In this document: one piece after another, positions 7,711-8,460 of the stretch
Layout of the letters: every line of letters starts with the position of its first letter
How positions within the stretch are numbered: the stretch's first letter is position 1
Assembly: GCA_003427395.1 (NCBI GenBank)
Contig: BFEA01000001.1
Coordinates: forward strand, 3,943,506 to 4,004,342
Length of the DNA: 60,837 nucleotides
From: Chara braunii
Lineage: Eukaryota; Plantae; Charophyceae
Direction: 5' to 3'
Notes under the pieces: generated by a model
Told to the model about the DNA's origin: nothing
The model's database searches: none
What the model saw: the letters and a program-made list of their open reading frames with translations, nothing else
Translations under genes and position numbers: made by a program

Positions 7711-8460
7711 GGTTTGACATTGTTTCTAAGTTGAACGGCCCAGTGCTTTGTTTATTGTCCGTTTTATGAAGGACCAAACATTGTTTCTAAGTTGAATTGT
7801 CTGGTTTATGTGTTTATTTATGAGGGCTTGCTTGACTCATCTTCAAGGCTTAGCAGTGTTCTTAAGCTAAATGACTTGGCCTGTCTATTTATTCTGGGGT
7901 TTCTGATTGAGGTTAGGTTGAAAGGTCCAACTTCATGCTTTGAGTGATTTTGGACGAACTAAACATTGTTTCTAAGCTGATTGGTTCAGTTCTTTGTTTC
8001 ATTTTGATGGAGGATTTTGGTGGACAACTAAGCATTATTTCTAAGCTGAATGGTTTAGCCTGAAACTACTCATAAAAGTAAACTGAGTATAATTGGAGGT
8101 ACCTTATTTATACTTGCATGTGAACTCACAACTGACATTGTTTTTAAGTTGAATAGTCTATCGTTAAGCCATATCACTAAGAAGAGAAGAAAAAGTACAA
8201 AGTATAATTGAAAGTAAACTTGGGCACGTCGAGCATTGTTTCAAGGTGAATGGCTTAACCTCCTGCCATATTTTTCTTTATTTTGAAGACATGTCAGAAA
8301 ACTATTAAACTTTGGATAGTTTAGAGCGACTAGGCATTTTTTCTAAGCTGAATGGTCTAGTCATATGCCTAAAAAAGAGAAAAGTAGTTGTGCAACCTAT
8401 TCGTGTATAAATCTAAGGCATGCTAGACATGGTTTCTAAGTCGAATGGTCTAGCATTATG
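7711..8460. repeat. Array of 9 conserved hairpin motifs (core RCATTGTTTCTAAGYTGAATGG) separated by largely unique spacers, copy A
   Basis: Cores start at about 7717, 7778, 7853, 7963, 8032, 8135, 8233, 8334 and 8427; spacing 61-110 bp. Flanks of most cores are mutually complementary. Confidence 0.9.

Follow-up and report, generated by a model that had tools for sequence, protein, structure and literature searches.

A hairpin array with a constant loop and variable stems in the long terminal repeats of a non-autonomous Ty3/gypsy-related element of Chara braunii

The window, a stretch of 60,837 nucleotides of the Chara braunii contig BFEA01000001.1, contains two long direct repeats that enclose two broken genes, and each repeat carries an array of hairpins. 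The repeat pair represents the long terminal repeats (LTRs) of a single 23-kb element that is non-autonomous, related to Ty3/gypsy, old and decayed. The 5' LTR (2898..11000, plus strand, about 8.1 kb) begins with TG and ends with CA; its first 4.3 kb were variable within the family (U3-like) and the remainder was conserved. The 3' LTR (17710..26233, plus strand) was 84% identical to it over 6875 columns, with a K2P distance of 0.18, and had a short deletion right behind its first three bases. The left target-site duplication, GCGT, was located at 2894..2897 (plus strand), and its decayed right copy, at 26234-26237, reads ATGT. Clean 4-bp NCGN duplications were found at other loci, and LTR ends and duplications were both clean in L003, L009 and L011. 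The primer-binding site (11003..11021, plus strand), which we take to be of the tRNA-Asp type, was conserved in all loci. A decayed copy of a short hairpin, common to a gag-pol relative in locus L004, lies directly before the 3' LTR (17673..17692, plus strand). Conservation of an 8-bp hairpin ahead of the 3' LTR was seen in the window (17673-17709), in ten loci and in L004 (26906). No purine-rich polypurine tract was found before the 3' LTR in any gag-only locus, the tract being interrupted by pyrimidines in all of them; it was purine-rich in the gag-pol relative. Ten further loci, fetched through gag and ORF1 homologues, showed the identical LTR–ORF1–gag–LTR plan.

ORF1 is broken in the window (13250..13959, plus strand), and intact copies elsewhere encode 236 amino acids. 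Homologues of ORF1 were found in Chara assemblies only, and comparison with Pfam, PDB sequences and the Atlas gave no match and no confident fold. The predicted model had a pLDDT of 39-45 with no recognisable RNA-binding fold; fold searches with this low-confidence model reached Z values of at most 5.3 and were discounted. ORF1 was also considered as an RNase H, and no likeness was found. The gag-like gene (14304..15243, plus strand), interrupted by stops and frameshifts, consists of a capsid-like N-terminal piece and a piece with one CCHC knuckle (15037-15243), and an acceptor-like site lies 15 nt upstream of its start. The homologues of the gag piece were Chara braunii proteins with 51-63% identity, besides which there were one repetitive fish protein and three weak matches. 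The dN/dS ratio was 0.17 for ORF1 and for gag alike, with dS inflated by CpG decay; ORF1 is under purifying selection.

Broken reading frames were searched in pieces, with Pfam run on 135 ORF pieces of positions 2400-30300. Pol was absent downstream of gag, and these profile searches found no fragment of it in the window element. The relative nested in L004 encodes protease, reverse transcriptase, RNase H and integrase in gypsy order. It shares with the gag-only family the primer-binding site, the LTR end, the pre-LTR hairpin, the CCHC region (51%) and a second LTR repeat, and it is plausibly a helper lineage. ORF1 was present in every full gag-only locus, alongside the array. Both were missing from the one gag-pol relative examined, so that the association rests on a single negative element.

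The second LTR repeat is an 18-nt motif starting GAAGCGCTGCC, which was not found in shuffles (8763..9273, plus strand). Its sites were located at 8763-9273 and 24236-24502 in the window, 16200-16560 in L004 and 19026-19288 in L002, and at 30440-31003 and 35846-36388 (minus) in L011. The gag-only family shows a period of about 122 nt; in other elements, among them the gag-pol relative, it is 52-54 nt. Being common to both families, this repeat may be the better candidate for a shared replication or packaging signal.

Several other features surround or interrupt the element. About 900 bp at 4631-5572, present in the 5' LTR only and bearing fold-back ends and microsatellites, look like a later insertion. 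The element itself was inserted into a related element, in the 3' part of its internal region (2400-2897 and 26234-27300; 73% to L012 4512-4839). The insertion falls at copy three of a repeat of roughly 150 bp whose other copies lie at 2590 and 2750; the 3' LTR of this nesting host appears to start near 27218. The initial annotation had mentioned rRNA fragments in the repeat, and an LSU rRNA-like stretch was indeed found at 28580-29100 (Rfam E 1.5e-10, just below the gathering score). Its homologue in the 5' LTR lies at 3481-3576, in the variable LTR part and 4 kb upstream of the array. Degenerate LSU rRNA pieces were seen at 28580-29100, 3481-3576 and 18947-19036, with related sequence in L004 and L005 only; the fragment sits in the variable 5' LTR part and also in another piece of LTR, which begins near 29019. 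Two unrelated gypsy elements follow. The one at 35050-42417 has a plus-strand gag-pol (37104-41993) and short LTR-like repeats with a 31-nt tandem unit; the one at 44168-54727 is on the minus strand (46747-52579), between 1.2-kb repeats that are 92.5% alike. The hairpin array was absent from both. The ORFs at 58898-59827 and 31549-32157 had no Pfam match and resemble, by eye, the end and the first ORF of LINE-like elements.

The element resembles TR-GAG elements in having LTRs, a primer-binding site, gag with a CCHC knuckle and no pol; in the part of the source consulted, TR-GAGs are described as under 4 kb with one ORF, a polypurine tract and a 5-bp target-site duplication, and that part does not mention a hairpin array (PMC4350172). 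Assignment to TR-GAG was rejected on its 23-kb length, 8-kb LTRs, ORF1 plus gag, missing purine-rich tract and 4-bp NCGN duplication. Very large LTRs, extra ORFs and non-coding tandem arrays also occur in the OTA/Phygy non-chromovirus Ty3/gypsy elements, whose described arrays differ in being sequence tandem repeats and not constant-loop, free-stem hairpins (PMC6317226). The NCGN target preference was the sole clade feature that agreed with Phygy; Phygy elements, unlike this one, are short and without large non-coding parts (PMC6317226).

Nine hairpin units were located in the 5' LTR (7711..8460, plus strand) and eight in the 3' LTR (22983..23675, plus strand) by core matches and loop anchoring. 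The hexaloops start at 7727, 7788, 7863, 7973, 8042, 8145, 8243 (degenerate), 8344 and 8437 in the 5' array and at 22999, 23074, 23184, 23253, 23357, 23453, 23563 and 23656 in the 3' array, all on the plus strand. A 20-nt core was matched 15 times at three or fewer mismatches against 0.02 expected, and two further degenerate units gave the totals of nine (7718-8447) and eight (22990-23666). The 5' array has one additional unit of 61 nt, and the unit-to-unit period was 61-110 nt. Own arms paired better than arms exchanged between units, with permutation p values of 0.009 and 0.0008 for the 5' and 3' arrays, respectively. Spacer-versus-spacer similarity exceeded z of 4 in 1 of 28 pairs and 0 of 21 pairs, respectively. 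These counts bear out what the initial annotation had seen, namely nine and eight units, complementary flanks specific to each unit, and largely non-repetitive spacers that are not copies of one decayed monomer. Its description of a non-coding repeat with no associated gene did not hold, the repeat being an LTR pair around broken ORF1 and gag.

No Rfam family matched the array at gathering or E-value thresholds, and no Rfam ribozyme matched within the window, so that the LTR was not classed as a retrozyme or as hammerhead-bearing. An exact-core search of viral and metagenome contigs gave isolated single matches without arrays (L001, L015 and L016); the sole array-bearing contig there, L014, belongs to the same Chara family. 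A conserved loop-like hexamer was observed 31-32 nt past the last unit in the window (8468), L008 (5588), L009 (6360) and L011 (59484). It has no upper stem, its flanks pair, and it is possibly a degenerate or alternative terminal unit. The longest array found, with 15 units, lies at L002 4640-5130 and contains a run of units at a 62-64 nt period, which suggests recent unit duplication. L002 has four more units on the minus strand (14246-14676), within its 3' LTR region, where an LTR fragment from this family lies inverted.

Across the family, the data support a model in which each unit comprises a hexaloop UAAG(U/A/C)U, an upper stem of 3-4 bp, an asymmetric internal loop and a lower stem of 6-9 bp. 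The loop TAAG(T/A/C)T was present in 107 of 115 units and was the sole invariant part. The upper stem was scored by loop-anchored counts across the 115 units, because two registers of the upper stem are mixed in the MAFFT alignment of units. The three pairs below the loop were intact in 111, 110 and 109 of the 115 units, respectively, through compensatory swaps. Seven upper-stem haplotypes, all Watson-Crick, were found: CCA/TGG (34), TTC/GAA (32), CTA/TAG (17), CCT/AGG (7), CCC/GGG (3), CTG/CAG (3) and CAA/TTG (1). Upper pairs were observed in 92, 91 and 90 of 96 units against 43, 69 and 70 of 96 after shuffling of partners; these counts come from units related by descent and not from independent events, which makes the seven haplotypes the safer measure. 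Different haplotypes coexist within one array (L003 and L014), and arrays at the equivalent LTR position in other copies carry different cores. The internal loop was longer on the 5' side, and the lower stem was usually closed by C-G. Lower stems paired better than swapped arms in all 10 arrays tested (p from 0.016 to below 0.0001), and 71% of lower-stem positions were paired in the true register versus 26-51% in slid registers, a test that used the MAFFT alignment and so understates upper-stem pairing. The younger array of L004 had a folding z of -4.45; a young array of this locus lies at 2830-3680. A self-complementary kissing loop, as in retroviral-type dimer signals, was rejected, a palindrome of 4 nt occurring in the loop of 9 of 115 units only.

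The inner helix CATT/AATG proposed earlier was not recovered. Among the 32 units carrying that type it showed no compensatory change, its A-T pairs passing to C-C or T-T, and together with the single bulge it is probably a wrong register. The helix that does covary consists of the 3-4 bp that close the hexaloop, TTC/GAA in the window units; the additional base described as unpaired after AATG belongs instead to the asymmetric internal loop. The earlier proposal of past selection on a folded single strand was supported by covariation of both stems throughout the family. In orthologous units of the two LTRs, changed pairs comprised 18 breaking, 2 compensatory and 1 kept, so that these differences were rejected as evidence of selection; the whole 5' array folded no better than shuffles (z 0.05). 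The window copy is dead and decaying neutrally, and selection acted in the active lineage before insertion. The evidence for selection therefore comes from the other family members and not from the two window arrays.

The apex and the remainder of the unit have different histories. Within the window array, the 14 nt round the loop were 89% alike from one position to another, and their likeness to the equivalent position of most other subfamilies was 38-59%; spacers showed the reverse, being 37% alike within the array and 50-61% at the same position elsewhere. L006 combined window-type apices with spacers nearer the other clade. It follows from this contrast and from L006 that apices have been rewritten along arrays more than once, with spacers and lower stems unmoved. 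Apex type did not agree with the gag tree, and neither the gag nor the LTR trees gave a sign that it had co-evolved with them. Genomic contigs contained joints that skip whole units, and unit number varied among arrays. Template switching in reverse transcription would be the obvious candidate for the copying of apices.

A TATA-like box at 7551..7558 (plus strand; 22824 in the 3' LTR), a putative promoter, precedes unit 1 by 160 nt. Of 11 LTRs examined, 10 had such a box ahead of the array, at a distance of 140-310 nt from unit 1. The box of the window lineage lies about 65 nt further downstream than in other LTRs, and in the gag-pol relative one occurs at a similar distance (3.2 kb) from the LTR end. 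Upstream of the box, a highly conserved block (7190..7465, plus strand) had the highest genomic and sense poly(A) depth of the LTR, with most of the sense poly(A) reads mapped to it, and ends in a donor-like site that 3 of 10 LTRs have lost. Sense reads of two stranded poly(A) runs piled up at 7200-7540 (depth 9-37) and fell below 2 over the array, where the few reads were all sense; a third RNA run covered both strands. Most mapped RNA reads were less than 90% alike and hence came from paralogues. These reads are compatible with predicted start and poly(A) sites that would place the U3 end and a short R near 7500-7700, and the array is probably located in the 5' leader. Donor-like sites were seen at 7464, before the box, and at 8743 and 10822, both conserved downstream of the array; no RNA joints were listed. 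The loss of the site at 7464 in 3 of 10 LTRs and its position before the TATA-like box make it less likely that an intron beginning there contains the array. With the downstream donors and the acceptor-like site before gag, spliced RNAs may retain the array as well, and a classical role as packaging signal becomes less likely.

Each of the two LTRs has the array at a constant position behind the TATA-like box, and its loop sequence and stem pairing were retained as the stem sequence changed. We consider it somewhat better than an even bet that the array is a multivalent cis-acting RNA site for an element-encoded protein, either ORF1 or Gag. The multivalent protein-binding platform of the initial annotation thus stands as the best reading, with ORF1 and Gag as candidate binders; its processing, CRISPR-like and attC-like readings were not supported. 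Transcription would start about 30 nt past the TATA-like box, so that the hairpins would form in R/U5, less than a kilobase from the start of the RNA. Each hairpin could offer its loop to one protein copy, and 8-15 sites would permit cooperative loading. The differing lower stems would prevent mispairing between units and limit deletion by recombination. The binder would most likely be encoded by the element, with ORF1 slightly favoured over the CCHC knuckle of Gag. If it is ORF1, the array might act as a Tat/Rev-like response element that aids transcription, export or stability of a 5-6 kb leader; if it is Gag, the knuckle would use the hairpins as multiple packaging sites. A bolder form, which we regard as possible and rather unlikely, is that ORF1 and the array are a cognate protein–RNA pair, a Tat/Rev-like regulatory module with an RNA-binding fold that has no recognisable relative, and with an array in which the apex is rewritten across all units as spacers and lower stems stay fixed.

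TAR and psi are structured cis RNAs of retroelements on which several protein copies load, and CsrB/RsmZ-type sponge RNAs are free small RNAs of bacteria with many hairpins, a constant GGA loop motif and variable stems. The Chara array shares with CsrB/RsmZ the many constant-loop hairpins on variable stems, as an analogy only. RRE, RxRE, RcRE and CTE are likewise structured cis RNAs in retroelements that load several protein copies (PMC10746203); they are single branched structures or few different hairpins, whereas the Chara array repeats one module 8-15 times and has candidate binders. No description of constant-loop, free-stem hairpin arrays was found in a search of the openly accessible literature. 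The array is therefore apparently an undescribed structured cis element within a known kind of mobile element.

The strongest alternative, which we still judge unlikely, is that the same RNA hairpins are bound by a host RNA-binding protein, as in iron-responsive or constitutive transport elements, the element borrowing host export, stability or translation control or titrating a repressor. The loop is constant across subfamilies that differ in upper stems and Gag, as a host partner would allow, and the shape resembles an iron-responsive element: a hairpin of about 30-40 nt with a conserved hexaloop, a short upper helix, a bulge and a free, variable lower helix (PMC8466369). However, the features that define such elements were absent: the Chara loop is UAAGNU and not CAGUGN, the upper helix has 3-4 bp and not 5, there is no invariant bulged C (C8), and no Rfam match was obtained. 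Moreover, the gag-pol relative should profit from a host pathway as well, yet it lacks the array and ORF1.

It is decidedly unlikely, in our view, that the selected structure is DNA, with hairpins in minus-strand strong-stop DNA, or extruded cruciforms, that serve reverse transcription or strand transfer or that control the promoter. The putative promoter position would have the array copied into strong-stop DNA, here about 3.4 kb long. The strands are not separated by folding z-scores, which were equal on both, or by wobble counts: the G-U to A-C ratio was 1.12 in own stems versus 1.26 in swapped arms, and near-perfect stems had 20 G-U and 13 A-C. The lack of overall G-U enrichment over A-C is expected where symmetric methylation decay dominates. 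On the other hand, 66 of 89 units had the lower free energy on the plus strand. At the fourth upper pair T-A, T-G and C-G occurred 29, 24 and 13 times, respectively; this wobble path, with few events, would suit plus-strand RNA, since the recurrent T-G becomes a C-A mismatch on the minus strand. The palindromes of Sirevirus LTRs, repeated fold-back motifs of plants that change in copy number, do have cis-regulatory roles (PMC4728375). However, they belong to the Copia superfamily, and their arrays lie upstream of the TATA box with arms conserved and centre variable (PMC4728375); the Chara array is the opposite, lying downstream of a TATA-like box with the loop conserved and the arms variable. 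RNA of the plus strand is favoured as the probable selected form.

We regard it as very unlikely that the hairpins are processing signals, small-RNA precursors or decoys, serving as endonuclease or Dicer substrates that release the spacers. Such a role would fit the repeat–spacer layout and the constant apex. Stems of just 10-13 bp interrupted by an internal loop, periods of 61-110 nt and spacers inherited by position argue against it, and read-end mapping in three RNA runs showed no piled ends or joints at the hairpins, from poly(A) libraries that miss small RNAs. A CRISPR array was rejected on its non-uniform periods of 61-110 nt and on spacers conserved by position across paralogous arrays, and no relevant Pfam match to cas or nuclease genes was found in the 135 ORF pieces of 2400-30300. 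Integron attC sites were likewise rejected, conservation being reversed (apex fixed, stem base free), with no cassette ORFs or tyrosine recombinase of that kind. Least credible of all is an origin without function, in which reverse-transcriptase template switching corrects quasi-palindromes and converts neighbouring apices so that arms stay complementary mechanically: homogenised apices and varying unit numbers do indicate that sequence-copying processes act, but such correction should remove the internal loop, one hexaloop was kept across subfamilies whose spacers are only 50-60% alike, and both stem tiers covary at a fixed geometry.

The favoured reading, an RNA site for an element-encoded protein, touches two poorly described matters. 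The signals by which LTR retrotransposons are packaged and exported are ill defined, Ty1 and Ty3 included (PMC4974528), and for most extra ORFs of plant gypsy elements no function is known (PMC6317226). In the Chara family a small RNA module, some 40 nt long and available in naturally occurring compensatory variants, lies beside two candidate binders under purifying selection, and both questions are open here to straightforward assays of binding and reporter activity. The concerted exchange of apices, with spacers unmoved, is an unexplained mode of repeat evolution. If true, the ORF1–array pair would be a natural, recombination-resistant analogue of the MS2/PP7 tagging arrays.
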